Shown here in pieces: positions 1 to 61,778 of a stretch of 64,000 nt of DNA. The notes beneath the pieces were generated by a model, which was given only the letters and a program-made list of their open reading frames with translations, did not search any database and was not told the origin of the DNA. The translations under genes and the position numbers were made by a program. The DNA comes from Haliotis rubra (lineage: Eukaryota): the NCBI RefSeq assembly GCF_003918875.1, contig NW_025767173.1:62001-126000 (forward strand), written 5' to 3'. Position 1 is the first letter of the stretch. Each line of letters opens with the position of its first letter.

Positions 1-2163
1 GTTTCTGTGGGAACTGAAACACAAATGCGAACATTTATTTCAGTGAGTAGTCATCAGCGAGCTGCATTTTGACTTTGAAGAAGGCAACATGCAAATGATA
101 ATATTTTAGCTATAAACTCACAACACTGAAATGAAAAAGGCATCAGCCAATAATTTAGAATACGCGTTATGATACAATTGTTTTCACAGGTATGACATAA
201 TCTGTGATACTAACCTTCATCGCGTTCGTAGATCCTCCATATCGGAGTAGGAATTGCCTTCAGCTTGTCCTCAATTGCCTCCAGTTTGTGAGCTGTGGCG
301 GATACCATGATGTGCCTAAACTGTGTCAAGTCCTGACGAGACTGGCGGAAAGATTCTATAGTCTCGATTGTCACTTCATCGTGAGCATGGCTGAAAATAG
401 GCATATTCACACTCCTTATCTCTGACCATCCCATCACACAGAGATTGCGTGTTAGAATGTTCGTTAGCTATAAGACCCAACACTAGGCTAAGCCACTAAA
501 CCTATTGAATATACAAAGTACCTAGCATGTATGATCGCTTAGCCCCAGTCAACCCATTCTTGAAGAACGAAGCTATATGTAAAACAACCAGCTCAATATG
601 TCATGCCCATTACAATAATTCACTTTTTCTCTGATGGAGCAAATTACCTCTAGTATACAAACCTACTTTCTTTTAGTGTTTTCCTCCATGCTGTCACAGA
701 TAAGTAGTGTTTTTCCGCTGCGTTCCAGTCGGTGGGCAGCTTCGAACATGAACACAGTTTTCCCAGGTTGTGATTCAGACACGTCTGATGGTTGGTGCAG
801 ATCAATATTGTCAAGTAACATTGACAACTGTTCTTTCTCCAAAACCCAGAACGCTCCTACTTCACTTTCTTTAGATGACATTGGGATCCTTGTTCTTGCA
901 ACTGCGGCTGTTAAAGCAGTCTTCAGTCTTTCAAATTTCGAATCGTTCATGTACTTTTGATTAGGAAAGCACGATTCAATTACCATAGACTTTCTCTTAT
1001 GAACGGTATTGTGAAAGTTTTTCTTTTTGAGATATAGTTTTTCCTCGGTGGCCAAAAAGATAAGATTGAACTTTTCTGCTGTGTATTTTCCAAGAATTAC
1101 CCTCATGCGGCGAGCCAATTCAGCATTATACTGATCAATGCTATACTGTTTTGACAGTTTCCATACAGAGTCTTTAAATTTGTCGATATGGATTAGACTA
1201 TCAACACTCCATCATCTATAACTCCAGCACGATCATTCTATAAACTACCCTAGTGTAGGTATTCCAACACGTTTGTCCTGGGGTTATAGAGCATGACAAC
1301 AATTATAACGCGAACTAAAGGTGGCATTAGGGGTTGTTCATAATTTATGGCCTGGGTGTGGAGTGTGGGAGAGGATGATGATGATGATGATTATGGTGAG
1401 GCATGTACAATGTGAGTGACCCCACCACCCCCACCACCCTAAATTTTATGAACAAAAAAGTCTCCCTGCATGTCATGTACAAAAATGATGACACCCCACC
1501 ACACACCCCTCCCTAGAACAATACCCGTGACGGTTCGGGTTAAAATTAACCTTCAGTAACCCATGCTTGTCGTAAAAAGGCGACTAACAGGATCGGGTGG
1601 TCAGGCTCCTTGACACATGTAATCGGTCCCATTTGCGCAGTGCGATGCTCATGCTGTTGATCACTGGATTGTCTGGTCCAGACTCGATTATATATAGACC
1701 GCCTCTCCTTACAATCATCATGAACAAGGATGTGGCTGTGCACGGCGCGATAAAGAACTTTTAGACTGTTGAATTCTTAGACTTCTGGACTGTGACGATT
1801 TCGGTACATTATGTAGACATGTACAACATTACGTCATCCAAAGCGATAGCCTTTGTCATCAGGGGTCCCTTGTTAGCCTGAATTGTCATGTGTCAGTTTC
1901 TCTGCGACTTTTAACTGGTTAAACCTAAACTATCCCTTCTAAATCTTGGAATTACTGATTATGCATGCATGAATCATTGAAGTGTATTATTTTTTTATTA
2001 GAGATAGAGCATCGGTGAATATGCGTAAGGAGTCGGTTATTCTATACCTTGTGGAAAATATGCATGAGCAGCATCGAAACTGTCACCATAGTAGTAAGTA
2101 GTTGGCGGAAATGGATCACTGCATGGTAATGTCAGCTGGTGTATGTCTCTGTCTGTATCTGAC
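1..2163 (-). pseudogene. Second copy (copy 1) of the Schlafen-GIMAP gene, internally deleted; the GTPase exon continues off the window start
   Basis: ORFs 210..437 and 663..1118 are near-identical to 54440..54667 and 54883..55338. About 313 bp corresponding to 55361..55673 (splice acceptor and SWADL-like part) are missing at 1140/1141. Confidence 0.7.
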
Positions 2164-3115
2164 CCTGAAATTGACATGAACATGCTTACAAAACGAAGTT
2201 GCGAGGCTTGAGGTAAACGTGTTATACAAAAATTTGTCTTCTTTCTGATGGGGAGTTTTGGGTCCAGGGAAACGGAGGAACCAAATATCCTATGTTTGAC
2301 TCAATTGAAGAGTAGCAGTTCTTTAGGGTTTTGACAAACTGACAAACCGATAAAGCAAGATACGTACAACTCTCCGAAAGCACTCGGTATCATCGTAATT
2401 TCTGCAATGATTCATAAACACATGCTCATGATGCGCGTGGGTATTTGACGTTGATTTTATGAACGATAATTTGTGACCTTGGAAGTGTTTTCAGTAACCT
2501 TTTTCATGTGCATAAAGAAACAGTTTTGCAAGAACTGGAGTTCAACTGGTGCCAAATGGGGTGGCTTCTTGTCTAAATGGCTTACCCCATAATGTAACCT
2601 AGACGTCATAAATGAAGAATAACATGTAACAACTTTACTCTAACTCTTCACTTTATTTAATGTAGCCGGAAAGAAGAAATATTCACGCTCTCGACGTGTG
2701 TTTTATTCAATCTATTAACTTTACTTCGTAATTCTGGCCACATGACCCATGGTACAGTTGTAAGATATAACATATGGGTCACGTGTCAGAGTGTTACATA
2801 TTTGTCAATCTCATTCTAAATAATGTACATAGATATAAAGCTATCAGCGCAGTACATTAACATCACAGGAGATAAATACATTTGCTAACTCTACCAATAA
2901 TGTTTCTATAATAAGGCAAGAAAACTATTTTGAATATATTTCTTATATACAAAAAAGATCTGGTATTCCATATGGTATTCCATTCTGAATTCATAAGTTG
3001 CTCTAACTAACCGTTTGTCCATGAGTACATAATTCGGGCTGCAGACGACATGTTATGTCAAAATAATGCACTAAAATGCAGACAACTCCAAACAGTGGCA
3101 ACACTTTGGGAAATA

Positions 3116-5682: not shown

Positions 5683-6111
5683 TACTACCCATCAAAAGTT
5701 TAGACTCACTAGTGTAAATGTAGCCACTTATTTAAGTCAACTCTTCTAAAATAGATTTTGCAAAAAATTCCATACCGTTTAAAGGTACTGTTTACACGTG
5801 AACTGATGTATTGTAAAACAGATTCGTAACGTTGAACATAGATTATTGTCATGGGTTAAAAAAATGATGAAACTGAGTGAAAATTGGCGATTTAAAAAAC
5901 AAAAATTATACCACAACACAGCTGTTCACATGCACGATAATTGCACATGCTTTTTAGCAATTTGATGCATGATCCTCGTGCAATTCATCTGCATAAAGTT
6001 TGCAGTTGGTTCCACAAAGTTAGTGGAGAAATTCATCTTCGATGTAACCACACATATATGCATAGCATATAGTGAGTGCTTTAAGTGAGTCTTAACTTTT
6101 GATGGGTAGTA
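5683..6111. mobile_element. Tc1/mariner-type MITE, about 430 bp
   Basis: TIRs tactacccatcaaaagtttagactcact / agtgagtcttaacttttgatgggtagta flanked by TA; no ORF. Confidence 0.85.
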
Positions 6112-16810: not shown

Positions 16811-18394
16811 AAAAAGCAATTCCTTTGCAAACTTGCCTATTATTTTGTTGGATTAGTTTTTATGAATTTCCGATGATCAATGATGCTGAATCATGTCTCT
16901 TACTTCTATCACTACGTTGATATTGTTGGCTGGTTGTATTCACGCCAGCTAAACAACCCCGGAAATGAGTACGGCGAAACCATACTACGCTTGGTTTATT
17001 GGCCAAGCGGACTTCCTGCTCAGTCCAAATTATATAGCAATGTTTTTACGTGTAACTACCTTATCGGGCCGACACTTTGGTCCGAAATCCGACATAATGA
17101 GAGTCCGAGATACAAAACATTTTTATTATGACAACAAAGAAGGATTACGTCGGGACCGTGAGTTTAGTCCTGTTTATACAGCAATCCGAGAAAGACAGGG
17201 TCCGAGTTTGACAGACTGCACTGTAGATAATAAGCAAGAAGTGGTTATCCTTGAACAGTGAACCTCTTTAAACTTTAGGCCTTTTCGTACATATTACCTA
17301 ATGCTGCATAGTAACATTCAAATTCACATTTCGCTTCATGATGCAAGTCATTGTTACTGTTTCAACATGTCTGTTTCAAAATTTGATCTTTTGTATATTA
17401 CACTTTGACACTCTATGAACCTTTTTTCTCATAACCATCTCCCCTTCTTCCATCAACTCTTCCAAAAGGAAAGAAATGTCCACTTCTTAAAACATCACCT
17501 CCATCACTATTGCTCACCCAGTCTCCTGTGTTCATGCATTTAGAATGATAATATCACTAACTGCAAACATTCTGATAATACTGCCACAGTTATAACCACT
17601 TTATGCCAAGATTTAGTTTTGTAGTTTCATAATACCTTCCATATATTTCTGTAGCTTACTGTTATCATCAACAGTGCATAGTATGCTCTTATACTGTCAC
17701 TATTCAGTGTTTGACTCTTTCTTCTGTAGTTCACCGTATATACGGTTTATACGGGCGTTTTTATTTAATAAACTTTTCAACTCATGGTTGCATTGCTTTG
17801 CTTGACAATTATGTATATGAGATTTACTGGGCAAGGAACTTTTGATACGTTGCATCAATGTACACTTCCATTGTCTGACTCAGGGAGTAGACTCTCAAAG
17901 TAGGTGACAATATATTGTGATGTATTTATAGTAACCGGACTGACCTCGATAATCAACGTTCATGTTTTTATTTATATGGGCAACCCCTAAGAACCAAATA
18001 CCTAATAATATCTACATCATGTAAGTAAATAATTTGATCAACAAAAATATGCATCATGTTAAAAGGACACCAATTGTTATAATAGATACAGGTGGTACTT
18101 GTTGCTATTCTTCCAGGTGCTCGGCTATAAGAAAAATAGAAACATTTACTGATCGAGCACGCACGCACTCACGCGGGCACACGCACGCACGCACGCACGC
18201 ACGCACACAATCAAACATGCTAACTTATGGAGACGACGTTAAACCAAGTTGTACTTCAGCTGCAAACTAGAATGTGTGCGGTTCCGTTCCTCGCCACACC
18301 ACATCAATGACGCTCACAAATGTTACTTGTTGCTTCCCCTCGCCTACCATTCGGCATGACGGGATGAGGACCTGTTGGCTGGGAGACCATACTA

Positions 18395-44109: not shown

Positions 44110-46950
44110 AGTGGTGTGCGTATTCGTGCTTGCACATTCCTCCTGGTATCATATAGCAGTGTACGTATACATGCATGCACATTCATCCTGATTTCATACA
44201 GTGGTGTGCGTATACATGCATGCACGTTCACCCTGGTTTCATAAAGGAGACTGTGTATACGTGCATGCACATTCATCCTGGTTTAATACAGGAGTGTGTG
44301 TATGCGTGCATGCACATTCCTCCTGGTTTCACAAGCAGAGTGTATATGTGGACGCACGTTCATCCTGGTTTCATACAGCGGTATGGGGATACGTGCATGT
44401 ACATTCCTCCTAGTTTCATACAGGAGTGTGTGTATACGTGCATGCACATTCATCCTGGTTTCATAAAGCAATATGCGTATACGTGCATGCACATTCCTCC
44501 TGGTTTCATACAGTGGTGTGCGTGTACGTGCATGCACATTCATATTGGATTCATACAGAGGTGTAAGTGTACGTGCATCCACATTCATCCTGGTTTCATA
44601 CAGGATTATGTGTATACTTGCATGCACATTCATATTGGCTTCATACAGGACTGTGTGTACATGTGCATGCACATTCATCCTGGTTTCATACAGGAGTGTG
44701 TGTATACGTGCATGCACAGTCATCCTGGTTTCATACAGCTGTGTGTGTATACGTGCATGTACATTCCTCCTGGTTTCATACAGAGGTGCACGTATACGTT
44801 CATGCACATTCATCCTGGTTTCGGCCGCCTCCGTGGTGTAGTGGTAAGAGCCTCCGCCCGGAGACTGGAAGGTCGCGGGTTCGATCCCCGACCGCGTCAT
44901 ACCAAAAGACGTTAAAATATGGTACTTGTTGGTCCCTGCCTGGCGCTCGGCATTAATGGGTACAACAAGGACTGGTCGGCTCGGAGTCACTATAATGTGT
45001 CTAGTGGGGTATTCATGCTTCACTGCGGTATGGTATCTCAGTGGGCTAGCACTATAAAACCAGTTTAAGTCTGGACTAGTACAAGCAGCCTCACATACAC
45101 ATACACATGCATGCACATCGTCATATGAGCGGAATATTCTTAAGCACGACGTTAATCCCAATTTCACCTCACCTCACTTCATCCTAGTTTCAGACGGATG
45201 TGTGAGTATACGTGCATGCACATTCATCCTTGTTTCATACAGCAGTGTGTGTATACGTGCATGTACATTCATATTGGTTTCATGCAGGAGTGTGTGTATA
45301 CGTGCATGCACATTCATCCTTGTTTCATACAGTGGTGTGTGTATACGTACATGCACATTCATCCTGGTTTCATACAGGAGTGAGTATATGTGCATGCACA
45401 TTCATCCTGGTTTCGTACACCAGTATGTGTATGTGTATACGTGCATGCACATTCATCCTGGTTTCATACAGGAGTGTGTCTCTACAAGCATCCACATTCA
45501 TATTGGCTTCATACAGGAGCGTGTGTTTACGTGCATGCACATTCATATTGGTTTTATACAGGACTGTGTGTATACGTGAATGCACATTCATCCTGGTTTC
45601 ATACAGAGGTGTGTGTATAAGTGCATGCACATTCATACAGATTTCTTACAGCTGTGTGTGTATATGTGCATGCACATTCATCCTGGTTTCATACAGGAGT
45701 GTGTCTCTACAAGCATCCACATTCATATTGGCTTCATACAGGAGCGTGTGTTTACGTGCATGCACATTCATATTGGTTTTATACAGGACTGTGTGTATAC
45801 GTGAATGCACATTCATCCTGGTTTCATACAGAGGTGTGTGTATAAGTGCATGCACATTCATACAGATTTCTTACAGCTGTGTGTGTATATGTGCATGCAC
45901 ATTCATCCTGGTTTTTATACATGAGTGTGCGTATACCTGCATGCACATTCATATTTATGTCGTGGAGGGGTGTGTGTATACGTGCATGCACATTCATGCT
46001 GGTTCCATGCAGGAGTGTGCGTATACGTGCATTCACATTCGTATTGGTTTCATACATGAGTGTGTGAATACCTGCATGCACATTCATCCTGCTTTCATAC
46101 AGGGGTGTGTGTTTTCGTGCATGCACATTCATATTGGTTTCATACAGTAGTGTGTGTATATGTGCATGTACATTCATCCTGGTTTCATACAGGGGGGGCT
46201 GTATGCATGCATGCACATTTATATTGGATACGTACAAGATTGTGTGTATACGTGCATGCACATTCATCCTGGTTTCATGCAAGAGTGTGCGTATATGTGC
46301 ATGCACATTCATATCGGTTTCATACAGGAGTGTGTGTATATGTGTATACATATTCATCCTGGTTTTAAGCAGGAGTTTGTGTATGCGTGCATGCACATTC
46401 ATCCTGGTTCGTACAGGAGTTTGTGTATATGTGCATGCACATTCATTTTGGTTTCATACAGGAGTCTGTGTATATGTGAATGCACATTCATCCTGGTTCG
46501 TACAGGAGTCTGTGTATATGTGCATGCACATTCATTTTGGTTTCATACAGGAGTGTGTGTATACGTGAATGCACATTCATAATGGCTCATATAGTAGTGT
46601 GTGCATCCGTGCATGCACATTCATATTGGTTTCATACAGTAGTGTGTGTATACGTGCATGTATTTTTATATTGGTTTCATACAGAGGTGTGTGTATACTT
46701 GCATGCACATTCATTTTGATATCATACAGCGGTGAACGTACACACTCATGCACATTCTTCCGGGTTTCATACAGGAGTGTGTCTGTACGAGCATCCACAT
46801 TCATATCGGTTTCATACAGGAGCGTGTTCATACGTGCATTCACATTCATATTGGTTTCATACAGAGGTGTGTGTATACGTGTATGCACGTTCATCCTGAT
46901 TTCATACAGCGGTGTGCGTATACGTGTATGCACATTCTTCCCGGTTTCGT
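44110..46950. repeat. 45-bp minisatellite (cattcatcctggtttcatacaggagtgtgtgtatacgtgcatgca)n
   Basis: Directly visible tandem array that generates many spurious overlapping ORFs. Confidence 0.97.
44823..45177 (+). mobile_element. tRNA-derived SINE family C inserted in the 45-bp minisatellite
   Basis: A box tggtgtagtgg, B box ggttcgatccc, (cacct)n tail, flanked by ttcatcct.gtttc. Confidence 0.88.
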
Positions 46951-48433: not shown

Positions 48434-48668
48434 GTGAGTGAGTGAGTTTAGCTTTACGCTGCACTTAGCACTATTCCAGCGATATGGGGGTGGTCTGTAA
48501 ATAATCGAGTCTGGACGAGACAATCCGGTGATCAACAGCATGAGCACCGATCTGCGCAATTGGGAACCGATGACATGTGTTAACCAAGCCAGCGAGTCTG
48601 ACCACCCGATCCCGTTAGTCGCCTCTTACGACCAGCTGAAGGTTCATTCTAACCCGGACCTTCACGGG
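48434..48668 (-). mobile_element. SINE family B nested antisense inside an older family-B copy (48300..48700)
   Basis: 14-bp TSD tgtcgatcactgga at 48420 and 48669. Confidence 0.88.
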
Positions 48669-48889
48669 TGTCGATCACTGGAATGCCTGTTTACAGACTA
48701 GAGCCACATAGTTTGAATACCAAACATCATACATACAAACCTAAGGGCAACAACTCTGTACAGGAACTTGTAGTTCCTGAGAAACTACACTGTTGTGGCA
48801 ATTACAATTCACTAAATTTTCTGATAAATGAAGCATTCTATGTAGTATGTATTTCACTTCCTCGGTGCATCCTCGGTACACTGACGGTA

Positions 48890-49960
48890 ATGTGGTCAAT
48901 AAACTTCATTCTTCATACAGACAGTGTGGTAAAGGTGAGATATGCATACACCAGAAATGTGCAAATTACACACCGCATCGCATTTAACCCCTGGCCCTTC
49001 ACCACAAGCCCATGCACCCGACACGGACTAGCCATGTCAGACCCAGTGACCTACTTTCCAAACGTCAACATCAACGCTCTCTTGCTTCTCTCAGGGGACG
49101 TGGAAGTGAACCCAGGCCCACGAGCAACCTTAGACAGCATTGGTAATGACATTACACGTTTGATTCAAGAGATGAAGGATATGAAATGTGAATTTAAGAA
49201 AGACATTCAGGAAGTAAAAGATGAAGTTGTAAGTATCCGCAGTGAATGTCAATCTTTAAGCAAAACTGTAAATAATATTGGAAATGACGTCGAAGATCTG
49301 AAATGCAACCAGGAGGTGCTACGACTGGACGTTACTGCTCTAGACACCCATATTAATGACATCGAAGCAAATCTTGAAGCCAGAATAAACAAAAACAATG
49401 GCACTGTTAAAAATGAACTCGACAAGATGGATATATATACAAGAAAAAATAACGTTATTTTCTACGACATAGCAGAAAATGAAAATGAATCATACAGTGA
49501 TAGAAAAAGTCTTATTGTCGACACATTACGCAATACTGTACCCGACAGGGAATGGAACGTTCGTGATATAGATAAGTCATACAGACTTGGACGAAAATCC
49601 AGTGGACGTTGTAGGCCGCTGCTCTTACGTTTTCTACATGAGGTTGACAAACTAGCTATCATCAAAAACAGAAGTCAGTTTAAAAGTGTAGGCATCGGCG
49701 TGTCCAACGACCTGACAGTGAACCAGAGAAGTGCGCTGCAGGAGCTGAAGGCCGAAAACAAGAGAGGTTACTTCAAGAACGGTAAACTGTATGTGTCCAG
49801 CGTGCCGCCAGCCCGGCGCACTCGATCACGTGCTGCTCCCGTTACGTGTAACGGTAGACCGCACGTACAACAGGGAAGCGACGTACGCCCGATTGTCAGT
49901 CAAGAACAGACCAGTTACATACCGAGCGAGGCAGGCAACGGAGAGTCGCCTGTCTTATAG
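48890..49960 (+). CDS. LINE ORF1 with N-terminal 2A-like (StopGo) peptide
   Basis: Open frame with LLLLSGDVEVNPGP at 49079..49120, followed by a heptad coiled coil and RNA-binding domain. The start codon is uncertain (48890 or 49034). Confidence 0.8.
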   Translation: MWSINFILHTDSVVKVRYAYTRNVQITHRIAFNPWPFTTSPCTRHGLAMSDPVTYFPNVNINALLLLSGDVEVNPGPRATLDSIGNDITRLIQEMKDMKCEFKKDIQEVKDEVVSIRSECQSLSKTVNNIGNDVEDLKCNQEVLRLDVTALDTHINDIEANLEARINKNNGTVKNELDKMDIYTRKNNVIFYDIAENENESYSDRKSLIVDTLRNTVPDREWNVRDIDKSYRLGRKSSGRCRPLLLRFLHEVDKLAIIKNRSQFKSVGIGVSNDLTVNQRSALQELKAENKRGYFKNGKLYVSSVPPARRTRSRAAPVTCNGRPHVQQGSDVRPIVSQEQTSYIPSEAGNGESPVL

Positions 49961-52900
49961 CAAACAAGCCAGGCCCAATCAGAATGCCTATCTTTTGTGT
50001 TCTGGAATATAGACGGTATTCAAAATAAACTTCATGATGAGGACTTTATTAACTTTGTGAAAAGCCAGGACATTTTTGGTATGATAGAAACATGGTCAAC
50101 TATGAACACTGCTGATTTCCATCAGTATTTTCCAGATTTTGATGCTATGGTTTTGAAAGCCAAACGATCAGCAAGTGTTGGTCGTAACTCCGGTGGCATC
50201 CTTTTATTGATACGAAAATGCCTTAGTACTTATATTACCAGTGTATTTTACACGCAACTGGGTATACACATTTTGTTTAAAAGTGATCTTTTTGCATTTG
50301 ATAGAGATGTTTTATATTGCTGTGTTTATGTACCCCCAGCAGGTTCTACTTTCTACGCAAAATGTGATGACAAAAACGGAATAACCATATTAGAAAGTGA
50401 TATTCTGGACGTCCTACAGGACTGCACCTCCCAGCCAGTGGTCATACTTGGTGGCGATCTCAATGCTCGGACCGGAAATCTGCACGATTTTACTGATGAT
50501 GATATGACAGGAGAGAATGAAGATCCGTTTGATATACCACGTGTGTCAGAAGACCATACAGTTAATCCATTTGGAAGAAGTTTGATTAACTTATGTATAT
50601 CGCTGGACATCCACATGATGAACGGCAGGTGTGGCAGTGACTCCAGTACCGGTGTGTGTACATACCTGTGCCACAATGGATCTAGTCTGATATGTCTGAT
50701 ATCTACATACCTGTTCTCGATATACAAGTCCTTCGAAGTTGTGTCAAGAGTCGAGTCGCAACACCAAGCAATTAAAGTGACATTACCGTCTGGTTTGCCA
50801 ACGAACACTAACACAGCCAGCGCAGAGGATACACCCAGTTACAGATATGTGTGGAAGGAATGCTTACGTGAGCAATTTGAAGTAGCCCTTATGTCTCAAG
50901 ATTTTCTATTTGCTCTAGATAAAGCTACAGATCTAATTGACAAGAACATTAACCAATCTGTTGGTTTATTCACAGAAAATATACTTGAACATGCATCAAT
51001 GTTTAAGAAGAAAGTCAAACCTTTCTGTAAGAGGCTTAAGAACACTTGGTATGATAGAGAATGTCACCGTAACAAAGTTGAGGCCAGAAAAGCATTGCGA
51101 AAATACAGGACTACGAAGATCCAGTCTCATTTCGATACATACAGAGTTTTGCGTAACAGATATAAGACCACTGTCAGAACCAAGCACAGAACTTTCCAAC
51201 TTCAACAGACATCATTATTGGAAGAAACTCTATGCGATAGCAAAGCGTTTTGGAAGCAGGTCAAGAAAATGAATGGTACTGTGAGACCAGATTATCCCAT
51301 TCCACCTCAGGAATGGTTTGACCATTTCAAAGAACTTTTCTCAGCAGGTGATACCCAGGAAAGGACTACTGCAGGGATTCGTGATATAGACAGTAACCAT
51401 GTTGATACTGCTGATGTCCCCATTACAGCTAAAGAAATCATGGAATCTGTGAATAAATAAAAGAGTGGAAAGTCATCTGGTCCAGATTATATAATACCAG
51501 AATTACTAAAATCATCACTCAAGTATATATTGCCTTACTTAGTAAAACTCTTCAACAAAATCCTTGATATAGGTGTTTTCCCCAACGGCTGGGGAAGTGG
51601 CATTATTGTTCCTATACATAAAAGCGTCTGTCTCAAAGACCCGAATAACTACCGGGGAATTACCTTAAACAGTGTAATTGGAAGGGTTTTCATATCTATC
51701 CTTAACAAGCGCCTATCGACGTGGACTGAAATTAATCACAAGATGTGTGAAGAACAAGCAGGATTTCGTCAGGGCTACTCTACGACGGACAACATCTTCA
51801 CACTAACTGCCTGTGTACAGAAATATCTCAGTAAAAGAAAAGGTCGCTTATATGTTGCTCTAATTGACTTTAGGAAAGCATTTGATTCTATCAATAGAAC
51901 AAAACTGATGGGCGTACTTCGAAACATCAACCTGAGTGGGAAATTGCTGCGCATTATTTAATCTATGTATTCACGAGTGTCAGCTTCTGTTAGATGTAGT
52001 GGAGGATCGTACACGCAAGTCTTTGATTGTCCAGTTGGTCTCAAACAAGGATGTGTTCTTAGTCCGGTCCTTTTCTCTCTGTTCATAAATGGACTCGCTG
52101 ATATGATATTACAGGAGTGCAAAGGCGGAGTACAGCTATACCCAGATCTATACGAACTATTTCTACTGCTGTTTGCTGACGACGTAATCCTAATGTCTGG
52201 CAAGGTCAACGGTCTCCAGCAACAGCTCAACATCCTGTCTACATTCTGTGACACATGGGGCCTGTCAGTTAACCTACAGAAGACAAAGGTTGTCGTCTTT
52301 AGAAGAGGGGGAATCCTTAGACGTTGTGAAAAATGGTTTTACAACGGCAAAGAGATCGAGCCTGTGACAAGCTACAAATATCTAGGGATCATGCTAACAC
52401 CATCCTTGTCTCTGCGCCAATCCGCCCTTCACCTTGCAACTAACGGCAAACGTTCCTTAGTGAACATCTTACGTATAATGTGGGCATATGGAAAGTTACC
52501 ATTCAAGACCTATTTCAAAATATTCGACACCAAAATAAAGCCCATCCTGTTATACGGAAGTGAAATATGGGGACACACACGAGTAGAGGCAATTGAGAGA
52601 GTTCAATATCTTGCTTGTAAACGCTACATTGGAACCGGTACAAACACACCAAATGCTATGGCCCTTGGAGAGTGTGGACGTCATCCTCTGTATGTGGATA
52701 GTGCCGTCAAATGCATCAAGTACTGGATCAGACTCCTTCATCTCCCGTCCCATCGACTACCACGTAAGGCATATGACATGTTGTATAATCTGGACAATGT
52801 AGGTCGACATACATGGTGTTCCGACGTTAGAACCCTACTACAAAATGTTGGAATGTGATATGCTTGGGCTTCACAAGATGTTGGTGTTACGGAATATTTT

Positions 52901-53353
52901 GTTAAGGACTTTAAACAGCGTTTAAAAGATATCAGTTCTCAACAGTGGCATGACGTTTTAACCAGCAGCTCAAGATATGACACATTCTCAACATACAAAA
53001 CAACTCTTGATGCTGAAGAATATTTATTAGACTCTTCACTACGAACTTTTGCGCGCCAGTTTGCTCTTGCAAGAGTTGGACATACAAGTCTACAGATTGA
53101 CAGAGGCCGGATATCAAATATTCCCCGTGAGCAACGTATCTGCCCACACTGTGATCGATATGAAATCGAAGATCTTTATCATTTTACTTTGATATGCCCT
53201 TCCCTTGACACCATCAGAAAAGCTATTCTACCAAGTTATGTGATCAGGAACCCATCAGTACACATGTTCTCAAAACTTATGTCAACAACTTCACACTCTG
53301 TGCTTAGAAAATTAATGGCATTCATTCATGTTGCTTTTAAGAAGCGAAAATGA
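49961..53353 (+). pseudogene. LINE ORF2 (APE endonuclease and reverse transcriptase) with in-frame stops at 51458, 51959, 52856 and a distal frameshift
   Basis: ORFs 49997..51460, 51530..51961 and 51965..52858 share one frame and contiguous motifs. Confidence 0.9.
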
Positions 53354-53595
53354 TTGTTTATAATATCACCCATATTATTATTATTATTGTATTATGTATT
53401 TGGGCCTATGGCCACACATGCATTATGGAAATAAAAACTACGGAAAAAAACTACGACACTTCAAGTAGAAATCGTCGGATCGGGAGGTTTCCGGATATCC
53501 TGGGTCCGGAAAAGTGTGCGTCCCCTAAATGTGTGTAAAGTTTCATTTCCCGGAACTTGGTGTCTAACGACTGTATATTCACGCCCACAACGCGA

Positions 53596-54266
53596 TCAGA
53601 GGATTATTTGCATCTGTTGAATTTGCCGTGTCAAGTTGTCCCTGTAACGTTTCTCTAGTTCACGGATGGCTGCAGTCAGTTTGTGAGGTATTCTTCTCAT
53701 CTGTTGCTCTTGCACATGCGTACTTTGTATTTTGCCTATTGCCCTGAGCATGTCATGTATTTGATCATTCGCCATCTTTGATTGTGTCCCAATGTTGACA
53801 AGCACGGGAGGGTTGTAGCAGAACTGGAGAAATTCTTTCAGGAAACTGGGAATGTTCTTGAGATATCCCTTCAAAGTGATATCGTCATCTAGTGTTGTGA
53901 ACACAAGCACTATTTTGTGTGATATTGGCTTCCTAGCAATTGCGCTGGCATGTTTGAAGAGCAGTTCCTCTTCATATGTCATTGGCGATGCCTTTACAAC
54001 AAGCAAGACAGCATCAGTGGAACTTGCCCTGCTCACCAACTCCTCAACAGTAGTCTGAATATTCTGTCTGTTGTGCAAGGAGAAACCTGGTGTGTCCATT
54101 ATCTGAAATGTCCTGTTATCCACGCTTGCCCGTCTCTCTTGACATACTGTTGTAGGTTTGAGTAATCCAGCTTCGAACAGTTTCTCGCCTGCAATTGTAT
54201 TGGCAAGGAGACTTTTCCCTGTCTTAGCGTAGCCCAGGAGCACAACACGCACGGTTTCTGTGGGAA
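53596..54266 (-). CDS. AIG1/GIMAP-family GTPase domain plus C-terminal coiled coil; terminal exon of a putative Schlafen-GIMAP fusion gene (copy 2)
   Basis: ORF 53596..54252 has G1 VVLLGYAKTGKSLLANTI, G2 PTT, G3 IMDTPGF, box DAVLLVV, G4-like VLVFTT.DD and a Q/E/R-rich helical tail. A splice acceptor (tgtgtttcag) precedes 54266. Confidence 0.88.
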
Positions 54267-54444
54267 CTGAAACACAAATGCGAACATTTATTTCAGTGAG
54301 TAGTCATCAGCGAGCTGCATTTTGTCTTTGAAGAAGGCAACATGCAATTGATCATATTTTAGCTATAAACTCACAACACTGAAATGAAAAAGGCATAAGC
54401 CGATAATTTACAATACGCGTTATGACATAATCAGTGATACTAAC

Positions 54445-54651
54445 CTTCATCGCGTTCGTAGATCCTCCAAATCGGAGTAGGAATTGCCTTCAGCTTGTCC
54501 TGAATTGCCTCCAGTTTGTGAGGTGTTGCGGATACCATGATGTGTTTAAACTGTGTCAAGTCCTGACGAGACTGGCGGAAAGATTCTATAGTCTCGATTG
54601 TCACTTCATCTGGGGCATGGCTGAAAGTAGGCATATTCACACTCCTTATCT
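54445..54651 (-). CDS. Internal exon: degenerate Schlafen-type helicase Walker B region, spliced in phase to the GIMAP exon
   Basis: VTIETIESF..LTQFKHIMVSAT..PTPIWRIYE resembles SLFN11 CRAETRKTF..FEHIQHIVIDEA..PGILWIFLD. Donor G|gttagt at 54445 (phase 1) matches acceptor cag|TT at 54266. Conserved in copy 1 (215..421). The 5' boundary is uncertain. Confidence 0.65.
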
Positions 54652-54886
54652 CTGACCATGCCATCACACAGAGATTGCGTGTTAGAATGTTCGTTAGCCA
54701 TAAGACCCAACACTAGGCTAAGCCACTAAACCTGCTGAATATACAAAGTACCTATCATGTATGATCACTTAGCCCCAGTCAACCCATTCTTGAAGAATAT
54801 ATAAAACAACCAGCTCAATATTTCATGCCCTTTACAATAATTCATTTGCTCTGATGGACCAAATTACCTCTAGTATACAAACCTAC

Positions 54887-55604
54887 TTTCGTTTGGTCTT
54901 TTCCTCCATGCTGTCACAGATGAGTAGTGTTTTCCCCCTGCGTTCCAGTCGTTGGGCAGCTTCGAACATGAACACAGCTTTCCCAGGTTGTGAATCAGGC
55001 ACGTCTAATGGTTGGTGCAGATCAATATTGTCAAGTAACATTGACAACTGTTCTTTCTTCAAAACCCAGAACGCTCCGACTTCCTTTCCTTTAGGTGGCA
55101 TTGGGATCCTTGTTCTTGCAACTGTGGCTGTTAAAGCAGTCTTCAGTCTTTCAAATTTCGAATCGTTCATGTACTTTTGATTAGGAAAGCACGATTCAAT
55201 TACCATAGACTTTCTCTTATGAACGGTATTGTGAAAGTTTTTCTTTTTGAGATATAGTTTTTCCTCGGTGGCCAAAAAGATAAGATTGAACTTTTCTGCT
55301 GGGTATTTTCCAAGAATTACCCTCATGCGGCGAGCCAATTCAGCATTATACTGTTCAATGCAACCAAATGCCTCAGATGCGAAAGATATAAAAATAGGAA
55401 GGCACTTTCGTGTAATGATTATTACGTCACATTGCAACATATCAGGAGGTTTGCTACTTGGCAAATTTAAGGTTGTTGCAAGCGACCGACCAAATACAGC
55501 AAATCCCCCTCCATTGTGTGCTAACAGTTCAGCAACTCGTTTCACCACATGCGGATGTTCCTTCTTGAGAGTCCCAACAAAGTTCAGTGGTAACATTGCC
55601 TGAT
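54887..55604 (-). CDS. Schlafen-like exon: SWADL/linker domain plus start of SF1 helicase lobe with degenerate Walker A
   Basis: ORF 54883..55647 reads GFAVFGRSLATTLNL..QCDVIIITRKCLPIF..EQYNAELARRMRVILGKY..FPNQKY..VLKKEQLSML..QPGKAVF..KTLLICDS. This is colinear with SLFN GILIFSRSWAVDLNL..ICDALLIAQNSTPIL..QDYCTRTAFTLKQKL..YPASY..LLTAQQYEIF..PGSGKT..RILYVCEN. Acceptor at 55604, donor gtaggt at 54886. Confidence 0.72.
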
Positions 55605-56051
55605 CTGCGTTAGTAAAGAAGTATGCAGTTAAGAGTATTAGACACATACATGTCAGTCAAGTATTATCAGGTGCTATACTGCCTTGACAGTTTCCATACA
55701 GTCTTTAAATTTGTCGATATGGATTAGACTATCAACACTCCATCATCTATAACTCCAGCACGACCATTTTGCAAACTACCCTAGTGTAGGTATTTCAACA
55801 CATTGGCCCTGAGGTTATAGAGCATGACAACAATTATAACGCGAACTGAAGGTGGCATTAGGGGTCGTTCATAACTTATGGTTTAGGTGTGGAGTGTGGG
55901 GGTGTTGATGATGATGATTATTATGGAGAGGCATGTACAATGTGAGTGACCTCACCACTCCCACCACCCTAAAATTTATGAAAAAAGAGACCCCTGCATG
56001 CCATGTACAAAATTGATGACACCCCACCACACACCCCTCCCTAGAACAGTA

Positions 56052-56298
56052 CCCGTGAAGGTCCGGGTTAAAATGAACCTTCAGTAACCCATGCTTGTCG
56101 TAAGAGGCGACTAACGGGATCGGGTGGTCAGGCTCACTGGCTTGGTTGACACGTGAAATCGGTCCCATTTGCGCAGTGAGATGCTCATGCTATTGATCAC
56201 TGGATTGTCTGGTCCAGACTCGAGTATATATAGACCGCCGCCATATAGCTGGAATATTGCTGAGTGCGGCGTAAAACTAAACTCACTCACTCACTCAC
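56052..56298 (+). mobile_element. SINE family B (truncated paralog at 1523..1703)
   Basis: Complete body, (actc)n tail, TSD ctccctagaaca. Confidence 0.88.
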
Positions 56299-56635
56299 TC
56301 CCTAGAACAAAATGGGTGACCTCCCCTTACAATCATCATAAACAAGGGTGCGGTTGTTGAACTCTTAGACTTTTGTACTGTGACAATTTCGGTACATTAT
56401 GTAGATATGTACAACATTACGTCATCCAAAGCGATAGCCTTTGTCATCAGGGGTCCCTTTGTTAGCCTGAATTGTCATGTGTCAGTTTCTCTGGGACTTT
56501 CAACTGGTTAAACCTAACTGTCCCTTCTAAATCTTGGAATTACTGATTATGCATGCATGAATCATTTAAGTGTATTATTTTTTCATTAGATATAGAGCGT
56601 CGGTGAATATGCGTAAGGAGTCGGTTATTCTATAC

Positions 56636-56752
56636 CTTGTGAAAAATATGCATGAGCAGCATCGAAGCTGTCACCATAGTAGTAGGTAGTTGGCGGAAAT
56701 GGATCACTGCATGGTAATGTCAGCTGGCGTTTTTCTCTGTCTGTATCTGACC
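56636..56752 (-). CDS. Probable upstream exon of the Schlafen-GIMAP gene
   Basis: 117-bp phase1/phase1 exon (tttcag|...|gtatag) reading SDTDREKRQLTLPCSDPFPPTTYYYGDSFDAAHAYFSQ. It is open in both duplicated copies, with synonymous differences (ACT/ACC, AGT/AGC), and its phase matches the acceptor at 55604. Confidence 0.45.
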
Positions 56753-56784
56753 CTGAAATTGACATGAACATGCTTAGGAAACGA

Positions 56785-57208
56785 GGTGAGGTGAGGTGAA
56801 ATTGGGTTTAACGTCGTACTTGAGAATATATGGCTCATATGACGACGTGCATGCGTGTGTATGTGTATGTGCGGCTGCTTATACTAGCCCAGACTTAAGC
56901 TGGTTTTATAGTGCTAGCCCACTGAGATACCATGCCGCAGTGAAGCATGAATACCCCACTCAAAGGTGGTTTTATAGTACTAGCCCACTGAGATACCATG
57001 CCGCAGAGAAGCATGAATACCCCACTCAGACACATTATATTGACTCCGAGCCGACCAGTCCTTGTTCTACCCATTAATGCCGAGCGCCAGGCAGGGACCA
57101 ACAAGTACCATATTTTAATGTCTTTTGGTATGACGCGGTCGGGGATCGAACCCGCGACCTTCCGCTTTCCGGGCGGACGCTCTAACCACTACACCAGGGA
57201 CACGGTCC
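56785..57208 (-). mobile_element. SINE family C with internal duplication of about 65 bp
   Basis: Reverse complement of 44823..45177; 13-bp TSD gcttaggaaacga; empty site in the paralog at about 2184. Confidence 0.9.
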
Positions 57209-58076
57209 GCTTAGGAAACGAAGTTCCGAGGCTTGAGGTATACGTGTTATACAAAAATTTGTCTTTTTTCTAATGGGGAGTCGTGGGTCCAGGGAAACGT
57301 AGGAACCAAATATCCTGTTTGACTCAACTGAAGAGTAGCAGTTCTTTATGGTTTTGACAAACTGACAAACCGATAAAGCAAGAGACGGACAACTCTCCGC
57401 AAGCACTCGGTATCATCGTAATTTCTGCAATGATTCATAAACACATGCTCATGATGCGCGTGGGTAATCGACGTTGATTTTATTTTGTTCCCTTGGAAGT
57501 GTTTTCCGCCTCCACAAGTAACCTCTTCCTTGTGAATAAAGGAACAGTTTCGCAAAAACAGGAGTTCAACTGGTGCCAAATGGAGTGGCTTTTTGTCTAA
57601 ATGGCGTACATCTAGACGTCATAAATGAAGAATAACATGTAACAACTTTACTTTAACTCTTCACTTTACTTTACAAGTTTACTTTGTAATTCAGGCCACA
57701 TGGCCCATGGTACAGTTGTAAGATATAACATATGGGTCACGTGTCAGAGTGTTACATATTTGTCAATCTCATTCTAAATAATGTACAGAGATATAAAGCT
57801 ATCAAGCGCAGTACATTAATATCACAGGAGATAAATACATTTGCTAACTCTACCAATAATGTTTCTATAATAAGGTAAGAAAACTATTTTGAATATCTTT
57901 CTTATATACAAAAACAATCTGGTATTCCATATGGTATTCCATTCTGAATTCATAGGTTGCTCTAACTAACTGCTTGTCCATGAGTACATAATTCGGGCTG
58001 CAGACGACACATGTTATGTCAAAATAATGCACTAAAATGCAGACAACTCCAAACAGTGGCAACACTTTGGGAAATA

Positions 58077-60144: not shown

Positions 60145-61778
60145 ACTTCAATTCTTTATTCGTGTAAATGTAGGCCATCGGCCCATGGTACAACGTTATA
60201 CATTGGCAGCCTTCAAGCTGTAGCGACGACGATTGTTAGCATAAAAGATAAACATGGCAAGATTTCTTAAAACAAGAGGAGTAGCATTACTCATCAGTCG
60301 ATTAAATTTACACAAGGTTGGATGGGTGAAAACATCGACAGGGATAAAACGTTTACGTAGATCATCATAGACAGTACAAATCAGTAAAAAGTGGTACTCA
60401 TTTTCTACAAAATTACAGGAACACATTTCACACAATCTTGAGTTTTTTGGTTTCTTTATATATCTACCAGTTCCTATATTCAGTTGGTGTGAACTACACC
60501 TGAACCTCGCTAAGGCAATACGAAATTTCTTGATAGTTATGCAATGGAGATATGGCTCAACACCAAAAATATATTTAAATTGAGAATATCTCAAAATGTT
60601 TATGCCATGACAATGTTTGTGAAAATACTATTCCCAAATATCTATATGAAGAAACGCACTCAATTAATTTACCTCCTAGATACCATTTTTCGTGCTTAGT
60701 AAGGATGCTACCATTTCTAAACACAACAATTTTAGATTTATCTAAGTTGACATATAGCTTGTATTCCTTGCAATGCTGTTCAAGGACATAATACGTTTTT
60801 TGTAGCCCATAGATGGCGTCAGAGAATAGAGTGACATCATCAGCAAATAGAAGGAGAAACAACTGAGTTAATTCTGGATGTAACTGTATGCCCGGATAAC
60901 ACAACGATTCAATACGATCAGCTAAATCGTTTATAAAAAAGGAGAACAAGAAGGGACTCAAGACACATCTTTGACGAACTCCAATATTACAGTCGAACAA
61001 CTGTGAAAAAGAATTATTGACTTTAAGGCAAGATTTAACACAACTATAGATGGATTGATGCAAGTTAACATCTTGGGTGTTAATCCTTTCTGTTGCAAAA
61101 CTAACGATAATTTCGATCTATTTACCAAATCAAATGCTTTCGAAAAGTCGATGAAGAAAGCATACAACTTACCCTTTTTTTGATAGAATTCTCTGTGTAA
61201 TAGAATGAAGAATAAAGATGTTGTCGACGGTTGAGTATCCTGTTCTAAACCCTGCCTGTGCCTCGGATATTTTAGCATAAGCTTCACTCCAAAATTTTTC
61301 GTCTGTCGTTAATCACTGCAATATAAACTTTGCTAAATACAATGAGAATAGTAATTCCTCTATAATTTGAAACTGAATCTCGATCTCCCTTTTTATGAAT
61401 AGGAACAATAAGACCAACCGACCACTGAGCAGGAAACACACCATTATCAAAGATCATGTTGAATAGAACTGTTTAATACGGAACAAGAATATCAGAAGAA
61501 AACTTGAAAAATTCAGCAATTAACTTATCATCGCCCGCAGATTTAGAGTACTTGAGGGTATTTATTGCTTTGGTAACCTCCTCTACTGTAATGGGCGAGT
61601 CCAGAATTGTTGTAACATTAATATCCGTGTGCTGATATTCGCTATTGTAAGTTGCATTACCATCTATCGACCCAGCAGCGTTCATGTACATATTACAGAA
61701 ATAGTCAAACCACTCTTGTAAAGATATATTGGGATGAACTACGGTTGTCCCCGAAAACCTTTTGAATATGTTCCAAAA
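60145..61778 (-). mobile_element. Truncated, internally deleted RTE-X-like LINE ORF2
   Basis: ITVEEV..KSAGDD, FIDFSKAFD, GVRQRCVLSP, LLFADD, YRYLG, LARFRCSSH, CEMC..ENEYHFLLIC; AATAAA at the 3' end. Confidence 0.88.

Follow-up and report, generated by a model that had tools for sequence, protein, structure and literature searches.

All Schlafens have an RNase core (PMC12135189). The SWADL domain, according to a structure paper of 2025, is a fold that occurs exclusively in Schlafens of groups II and III (PMC12135189). In complex structures of SLFN12, the C-terminal region of this domain accommodates PDE3A (PMC12135189). Apart from mammals, a review of 2022 names no Schlafen-bearing animals other than Xenopus laevis and Callorhinchus (PMC8875196). 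In molluscs, AIG genes are known to have acquired additional N-terminal domains, for example death/CARD, kinase, and ARM; the 19 architectures recorded in a survey of the AIG genes of the snail Biomphalaria feature these and hint domains, and none has Schlafen parts (PMC7053062). Here, we describe a gene of the blacklip abalone Haliotis rubra that combines parts of both families. The gene is located on the minus strand of a stretch of 64,000 nucleotides (NCBI RefSeq assembly GCF_003918875.1, contig NW_025767173.1, positions 62,001 to 126,000; assembly GCA_003918875.1, contig QXJH01000484.1), referred to here as the window, in which all positions are given unless another sequence is named. The best explanation of the data, and in our judgement a likely one, is an intact and expressed six-exon gene encoding, in this order, a basic tail, a SWADL domain, a dead stub of helicase lobe 1, an AIG1/GIMAP GTPase domain, and a helical tail. 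An earlier note had proposed a Schlafen-GIMAP fusion at this locus, of an architecture not known to be described, and paper searches on Schlafens in connection with GIMAP, AIG1, molluscs, or abalone yielded no account of it. The Schlafen parts of this proposal stand, as they are present by profile, fold, and RNA evidence; the name does not, since the protein lacks the RNase core and is therefore not a Schlafen in the family sense, but carries the Schlafen middle domain together with a remnant of the helicase.

Results

Gene structure and transcript evidence

Within the window, four coding exons (exons 3 to 6; Table 1) form one open frame of 560 codons, and the whole gene comprises six coding exons that encode approximately 590 residues. 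The first two, which the range 53596-56752 of the earlier note misses, are short and located outside the window, about 19 kb upstream (positions 6001-6057 and 6447-6482 of L002, a copy of the contig on which the window ends at 18239). Together they encode a 30-residue basic stretch that resembles a nuclear localization signal (MMSGRKRT...). Exon 3 matches residues 30-69 of P0003, a protein that carries this gene's own N-terminus, and exon 4 is a single uninterrupted open exon of 718 nucleotides (nt).

That these are consecutive minus-strand exons of one gene, as had been proposed, follows from their joining in frame and from the contigs into which three RNA runs with the same species label (X1, X2, and X3) were assembled. 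Record 12 of X3 (1949 nt) maps to 53484-54266, 54445-54620, 54887-55604, and 56636-56755 and has an additional 124 nt upstream that are consistent with the two outside exons, while record 3 of X1 (1178 nt) and record 8 of X2 (584 nt) repeat the same exon joints. The RNA contigs of all three runs show exactly the GT-AG borders read from the sequence, and no insertions or deletions relative to the window are listed for them in exon interiors. RNA depth is zero within the introns (54687-54803 and 55623-55856); a further run, X5, covers the introns and behaves as DNA. The 178-bp GT-AG intron through which the GIMAP exon had been proposed to be joined (junction G/TT) is therefore supported by both sequence and RNA, and the GTPase exon is connected to the upstream exons in contigs of all three runs, which places the AIG1 GTPase in the same transcript. 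One detail of these exon borders had to be corrected. Exon 5 starts at 54620 (acceptor 54621/54620) and not at about 54651, i.e., 31 bases further on, and since this acceptor fits the phase and is used in RNA, there is no longer a need for the hidden micro-exon or decay that had been suspected at 54886-54651. Between the RNA contigs and the window, 2-5% of positions are different, and many of these differences are shared with X5; the contigs probably stem from the other allele or possibly from a near-identical paralogue. The second copy of the gene in the window (see below) was ruled out as their source, since it has lost the 5' part of exon 4, which is present in the contigs. The gene is real, intact, spliced, and expressed. 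An Rfam search over 53000-57600 returned no RNA family match.

In the NCBI annotation, two separate models take the place of this gene: XP_046584065.1, with 169 residues, and XP_046584059.1, with 388 residues and the name "GTPase IMAP family member 4-like". In the former (55327-55604), a GC-AG splice within exon 4 connects the end of ELAR to the start of KLSQYRS and leads to an early stop; this splice is not seen in the RNA contigs examined, and the model may reflect a minor isoform or an error of prediction. The latter begins at an internal Met of exon 4. Single-gene relatives with the same order of parts are found in H. rufescens (XP_046342684.2, 558 residues, 72% identical in exon 4), H. 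cracherodii (559 residues), and H. asinina (520 residues, 82% identical in exon 4), so that the architecture is common to four Haliotis species. H. rufescens also has a 616-residue single-gene paralogue, and the exon pattern is the same in the H. rufescens locus (L001).

Schlafen likeness of exons 4 and 5

The likeness of the N-terminal module to Schlafens is far beyond chance. A profile of 34 module sequences (A1) matches human SLFN5 over residues 427-619 (E value, 6.9e-8) as well as SLFN11 (4.7e-4), SLFN12 (0.02), and SLFN14 (0.7), with nothing else credible. The module consensus kSLAvtLNl aligns to SQSWAVDLGL of SLFN5 and SRSWAVDLNL of SLFN11, the SWADL motif, and L-T-K-E-Q...PGSGAT of the abalone sequences aligns to L-T-N-K-Q...GLPGSGKT, which comprises the Q-motif and Walker A. 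The assignment of exon 4 to the SWADL/linker and Walker A region, made by eye in the earlier note, is thus borne out by profile and by fold (see below). In a protein language-model search with exon 4 (ESM Atlas), ranks 1-2 were Schlafen clusters (0.96, with 209-212 shared features). The Pfam family PF21026 ("Schlafen, GTPase-like domain"), which represents the SWADL/linker domain present in this protein, matched exon 4 below threshold (1e-4) and is the sole recurrent Pfam family among module members (6 of 28; best, 8.4e-6). A single-sequence phmmer search of exon 4 against PDB sequences yielded nothing useful, and only the family profile reached Schlafens.

The AlphaFold model of exon 4 made with A1 was confident, with a predicted local distance difference test (pLDDT) score of 86 and a predicted template modeling score of 0.85. 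Foldseek compared this model with the PDB and gave 13 matches with E values up to 1.1e-3, 12 of them below 1e-3, all of which were Schlafens (SLFN5, SLFN11, SLFN12, and SLFN14). SLFN5 was the best of these (1.1e-7; TM score, 0.71; 249 columns), and the first match outside this list had an E value above 0.1. For the full-length fold, the H. rufescens protein P0001 (72% identical) was used as a stand-in for the window protein and modelled with A2, giving a pLDDT of 71; the block means for residues 60-360 were mostly 80-95, with dips to 57-73 at five places, and residues 1-56 form a short, basic stretch that is predicted to be disordered. With this model, Foldseek again placed SLFN5 first (9.2e-12), now over 337 columns versus 249 for exon 4, with GIMAPs next. 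VIA-align gave 22.8 for SLFN5 (297 residues at 3.1 A; model residues 39-363, chain up to 684), 17.6 for the SLFN11 monomer (310 residues at 3.9 A; chain up to 710), 18.1 for the SLFN12 SWADL domain (151 residues at 2.5 A; model residues 68-232 on chain residues 387-540), and 16.5 for GIMAP2 (173 residues at 3.4 A; model residues 372-554). The VIA-align match to Schlafens reaches model residue 363-370, equivalent to residue 684 of SLFN5 and 710 of SLFN11. The Foldseek match is lengthened by exon 5, so that the likeness to Schlafens extends through this exon into helicase lobe 1, in line with the earlier assignment of exon 5 to the Walker B region. No match to the Schlafen RNase core (AlbA_2, PF04326) was found in full-length P0001 or P0003 or in any of the 49 members of the wider family described below.

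The helicase stub and the GTPase domain

The helicase match ends at about SLFN11 residue 710, so that only the first part of lobe 1 is present; lobe 2 is absent, and no match to PF09848 (two-lobe superfamily 1 [SF1] helicase) was found in this gene or in P0001/P0003. In the Walker A remnant DSQPGKAV, the Lys is retained and the Gly and Ser/Thr of GxxxxGK[ST] are gone, while most paralogues have PGSGATT at this position, with Lys replaced by Ala. The remnant is located directly before a helix in the model, in a P-loop-like manner, and is followed by three more strand-helix units. Exon 5 contributes the strand IWRIYERDE (IWRIYE in the model) and the strand FKHIMVSAT, which we infer from fold order and from the paralogues to occupy the Walker B position; several paralogues keep DE here, as in NIVDETN. 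Given the degenerate Walker A and the SA at the predicted Walker B position, it is very unlikely that the stub uses ATP.

By every sequence test, the C-terminal part is assigned to the GIMAP/AIG1 family. Exon 6 matches PF04548 (AIG1) with an E value of 7.2e-25 and a score of 88 bits (cut-off, 27), and it aligns to human GIMAP7 (2e-11) and GIMAP4. The G1 and G3 motifs are intact, the conserved box between G3 and G4 is present, with FTTLDD in exon 6, and G4 and G5 are less canonical than G1 and G3.

A mobile cassette in abalone

The SWADL domain and the stub together form a unit of about 300 residues that ends at a conserved W-x-F strand; in many abalone proteins, this unit makes up the N-terminal end or lies close to it. 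An exhaustive phmmer search against 1.84 billion representatives returned 30 relatives, all 23 of those looked up being from Haliotis, and a profile search returned 49 proteins with this cassette, all from four Haliotis species. Word-indexed searches and the exhaustive phmmer search gave Haliotis proteins only, save one fish GIMAP that was matched in the GTPase part, although absence in other molluscs is not provable in this way. The unit is a mobile cassette of a Haliotis-only gene expansion comprising dozens of genes. It occurs with an nSTAND3 nucleoside triphosphatase (NTPase) domain and ankyrin repeats (P0016, P0020, and P0025), with SPRY (P0007; weak, sub-threshold Pfam match), as two tandem cassettes (P0004-P0006), and in a second fusion with AIG1 (P0015, H. 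rubra XP_046568153.1). The nSTAND3 domain is restricted to some of these paralogues, and no NACHT, NB-ARC, or nSTAND Pfam match was found in the gene described here.

In a tree of the module, the clade of this gene (support, 100/99) is located on a long separate branch, and the AIG1 protein P0015 pairs with the nSTAND3-ankyrin protein P0016 (100/100) far from this clade, so that at least two gains of the AIG1 partner are needed. The cassette of P0015 is nearly identical to that of P0016, which suggests recent exon shuffling. The earlier note had assumed that the GTPase replaced the rest of the helicase. However, the same cassette endpoint is found in dozens of abalone paralogues with other C-termini, which places the truncation of the helicase before the GTPase fusion, and the architecture is a product of domain shuffling, not of replacement inside one gene.

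Selection and the second copy

A comparison of the window gene with its H. rufescens counterpart (Nei-Gojobori) gave ratios of nonsynonymous to synonymous substitutions (dN/dS) of 0.31 for the SWADL domain, 0.29 for the stub, and 0.28 for the AIG1 core, at a dS of about 0.5. All three parts are under similar purifying selection. A second tandem copy is located about 53 kb away (Table 1). In this copy, a deletion of approximately 300 bp between two short "cagtata" repeats took the acceptor of exon 4' and about the first 80 codons, i.e., the start of the SWADL domain. Relative to the first copy, its dN/dS is 0.58 and its intron is 95.8% identical; NCBI annotates only a 241-residue GIMAP9-like protein (P0046) here.

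Table 1. Positions of the gene, its motifs and introns, and the second copy in the window
Feature	Position	Strand	Evidence or remark
Coding exon 3 of 6 (GSDTD...YFSQ)	56636..56752	-	AG acceptor 56754-56753; phase-1 donor GT 56635-56634, one base carried over
Intron, 1031 bp, with very high-copy interspersed repeat at ~55974-56324	55605..56635	-	Skipped by RNA contigs
Exon 4, SWADL (Schlafen linker) domain and start of pseudo-helicase lobe	54887..55604	-	Donor GT 54886-54885, AA carried over
SWA(V)DL counterpart GRSLATTLNL	55462..55491	-	Profile alignment
Walker A remnant DSQPGKAV	54973..54996	-	Aligned to PGSGAT in paralogues and GLPGSGKT of SLFN5
Intron, 266 bp, GT-AG, phase 2 (AA/C)	54621..54886	-	Sequence; skipped by RNA contigs in three runs; RNA depth zero at 54687-54803
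Exon 5, remainder of pseudo-helicase lobe	54445..54620	-	Acceptor AG 54622-54621, AA+C gives Asn; donor GT 54444-54443, G carried over
Predicted Walker-B-equivalent strand FKHIMVSAT	54524-54550	-	SA in place of DE; model counterpart FKYIVVAAT
Intron, 178 bp, GT-AG, phase 1 (G/TT)	54267..54444	-	Sequence; skipped by RNA contigs in three runs
Exon 6, AIG1/GIMAP GTPase, C-terminal helical tail, stop codon	53596..54266	-	G+TT gives Val at 5' junction
G1 GYAKTGKS	54211-54234	-	Intact
G3 DTPG	54085-54096	-	Intact
Second tandem copy, ~53 kb away	1..2168	-	tblastn and sequence
Second copy, exon 3'	2168-2049	-	
Second copy, exon 4' remnant	~1140-667	-	
Second copy, exon 5'	390-215	-	
Second copy, exon 6'	from 13	-	Leaves window

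Surroundings of the gene

The gene is located between transposon remains, with fragments resembling short interspersed nuclear elements (SINEs), mariner elements, and further long interspersed nuclear elements (LINEs) upstream of 56.8 kb. A LINE-type retrotransposon on the plus strand (48668-52858) is found just downstream of the 3' end of the gene; inspection by eye of the translated open reading frames (ORFs) showed reverse-transcriptase-like pieces, a 430-residue ORF1-like frame, and a 487-residue frame in it, and more reverse-transcriptase-like ORFs at 60196-61700 on the minus strand. Very high-copy interspersed repeats, which are probably SINE-like, are found within the introns of the gene and directly upstream of them (55974-56324 and 56676-56900), with word depths of thousands to millions in RNA and DNA runs, and many loose contig ends fall at about 56295-56300. 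A 66-nt unit is doubled at 56897-57028. The region 44175-46950 is a long imperfect tandem array of HIHPGFIQECVYTCM-like units with several frames on both strands and looks like a minisatellite, not a gene. Outside the window and about 20 kb upstream, on the same contig, an AIG1-like coding stretch in the opposite orientation (L002 4629-5150) is 24% identical to the GTPase described here, which suggests a local GIMAP cluster.

Discussion

The NCBI models XP_046584065.1 and XP_046584059.1 divide the locus, which could mean that a 169-residue SWADL-only gene and a 388-residue GIMAP4-like gene are neighbours and that the joined form is a read-through or an assembly artefact. However, exon 4 is uninterrupted, and the RNA contigs of X1 and X3 span it from end to end and run on into exons 5 and 6. 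An internal Met of exon 4 is all that marks the start of the 388-residue model, other Haliotis species have single-gene models of 520-616 residues, and the predicted fold is continuous across the supposed gene border. We consider two genes highly improbable and rejected this reading. That the Schlafen likeness is a generic P-loop or alpha/beta resemblance without homology might be argued from the empty single-sequence search of the PDB, the sub-threshold Pfam match, and an identity to SLFN proteins of just 14-18%; next to the profile and Foldseek matches, we regard this as highly improbable. It is also very unlikely that the gene is a decaying, functionless chimera that arose recently when exons were shuffled by chance and that is turning into a pseudogene in the same way as the copy next to it. 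The missing SWADL start of that copy, the dead ATPase motifs, and the transposons around the locus would fit such a fate, but the 560-codon frame is open, spliced RNA shows expression, all three parts have a dN/dS of about 0.3 against H. rufescens at a dS of about 0.5, and the architecture is found in four Haliotis species. A number of points weigh against the fusion gene as we describe it. The PF21026 match stays below the gathering score (22-25 bits versus 27), and the full-length fold is that of the 72%-identical H. rufescens relative, with modest confidence in its AIG1 part (pLDDT, 40-80). NCBI marks the model of P0015, the protein that speaks for an independent second fusion with AIG1, as LOW QUALITY, and it annotates two genes at the locus itself. 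The mismatch of 2-5% means that the source of the RNA contigs may be another allele or a near-identical paralogue and not this exact copy. Finally, adaptor, sensor, and effector roles are not separable by sequence.

With respect to function, our tentative proposal, which is plausible but short of probable, is that the cassette acts as a scaffold. Its use of ATP would have been lost family-wide, yet it is conserved, and it could serve in binding and assembly as an adaptor, at the position that death-fold or TIR domains take in other immune NTPases. The GIMAP domain would supply GTP-dependent self-association, and the result may be a nucleotide-switched, immune-type assembly. This reading is favoured by the conservation of a cassette that has apparently lost ATP use, by its adaptor-like N-terminal position, and by partner binding in SLFN12, as the SLFN12-PDE3A complex sets a precedent for SWADL as a protein-binding scaffold. 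In STAND NTPases generally, the N-terminal part is an effector or adaptor and the repeats are the usual sensor, and SF1 helicases hold nucleic acid across both lobes. Both points speak against a direct nucleic acid sensor that would gate the GTPase in the manner of the SLFN11/SLFN5 helicase region, since only part of lobe 1 is present and the cassette occupies the effector/adaptor position in the nSTAND3-ankyrin paralogues. Despite the homology to the Schlafen part that adjoins the nucleic-acid-binding helicase and the basic N-terminal tail, we therefore find such a sensor unlikely. Beyond the scaffold proposed for this one protein, it is conceivable, if doubtful, that the cassette moves independently as a domain for signalling or as an adaptor within a network of innate immunity specific to abalone, in which like-with-like contacts tie GIMAP GTPases to nSTAND3-ankyrin receptors. 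If so, the Schlafen "middle" would be no vertebrate-only linker but an old and separable module, already present before the Schlafens of vertebrates.

H. rubra is farmed, and herpesvirus and Vibrio disease are a problem in this species. The SWADL fold with the first helicase strands is found here in a mollusc, without the RNase core, in dozens of genes, and linked to immune-type NTPases, including GIMAP. With this, SWADL becomes studiable as a stand-alone module, the question of Schlafen origin is reopened, the GIMAP repertoire of molluscs gains an architecture, and a split gene model in the reference annotation is corrected.

Compared with known systems, the abalone protein differs from group III Schlafens (human SLFN5, SLFN11, and SLFN14), which have the RNase (AlbA_2) core and a full helicase: it has neither, its helicase stops at a point equivalent to about SLFN11 residue 710 without lobe 2, both Walker motifs are degenerate, the stub is followed by a GTPase domain, and the host is a mollusc. 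SLFN12 of group II likewise has a SWADL domain without a working helicase and superposes on the model in this part; it differs in having the RNase core and no GTPase. With the GIMAP/AIG1 GTPases (human GIMAP2 and GIMAP7, mollusc AIG), the protein shares the AIG1 domain, G1, G3, the conserved box, and the helical tail, whereas the Arg of the GIMAP7 "GRYT" is a Pro in the abalone protein. The abalone cassette paralogues (for example, P0016, P0020, P0025, P0007, and P0004-P0006) have the same module and W-x-F end at 20-30% identity and differ in their C-terminal parts, in having mostly GSGATT at Walker A, and, in some cases, in having DE at Walker B.

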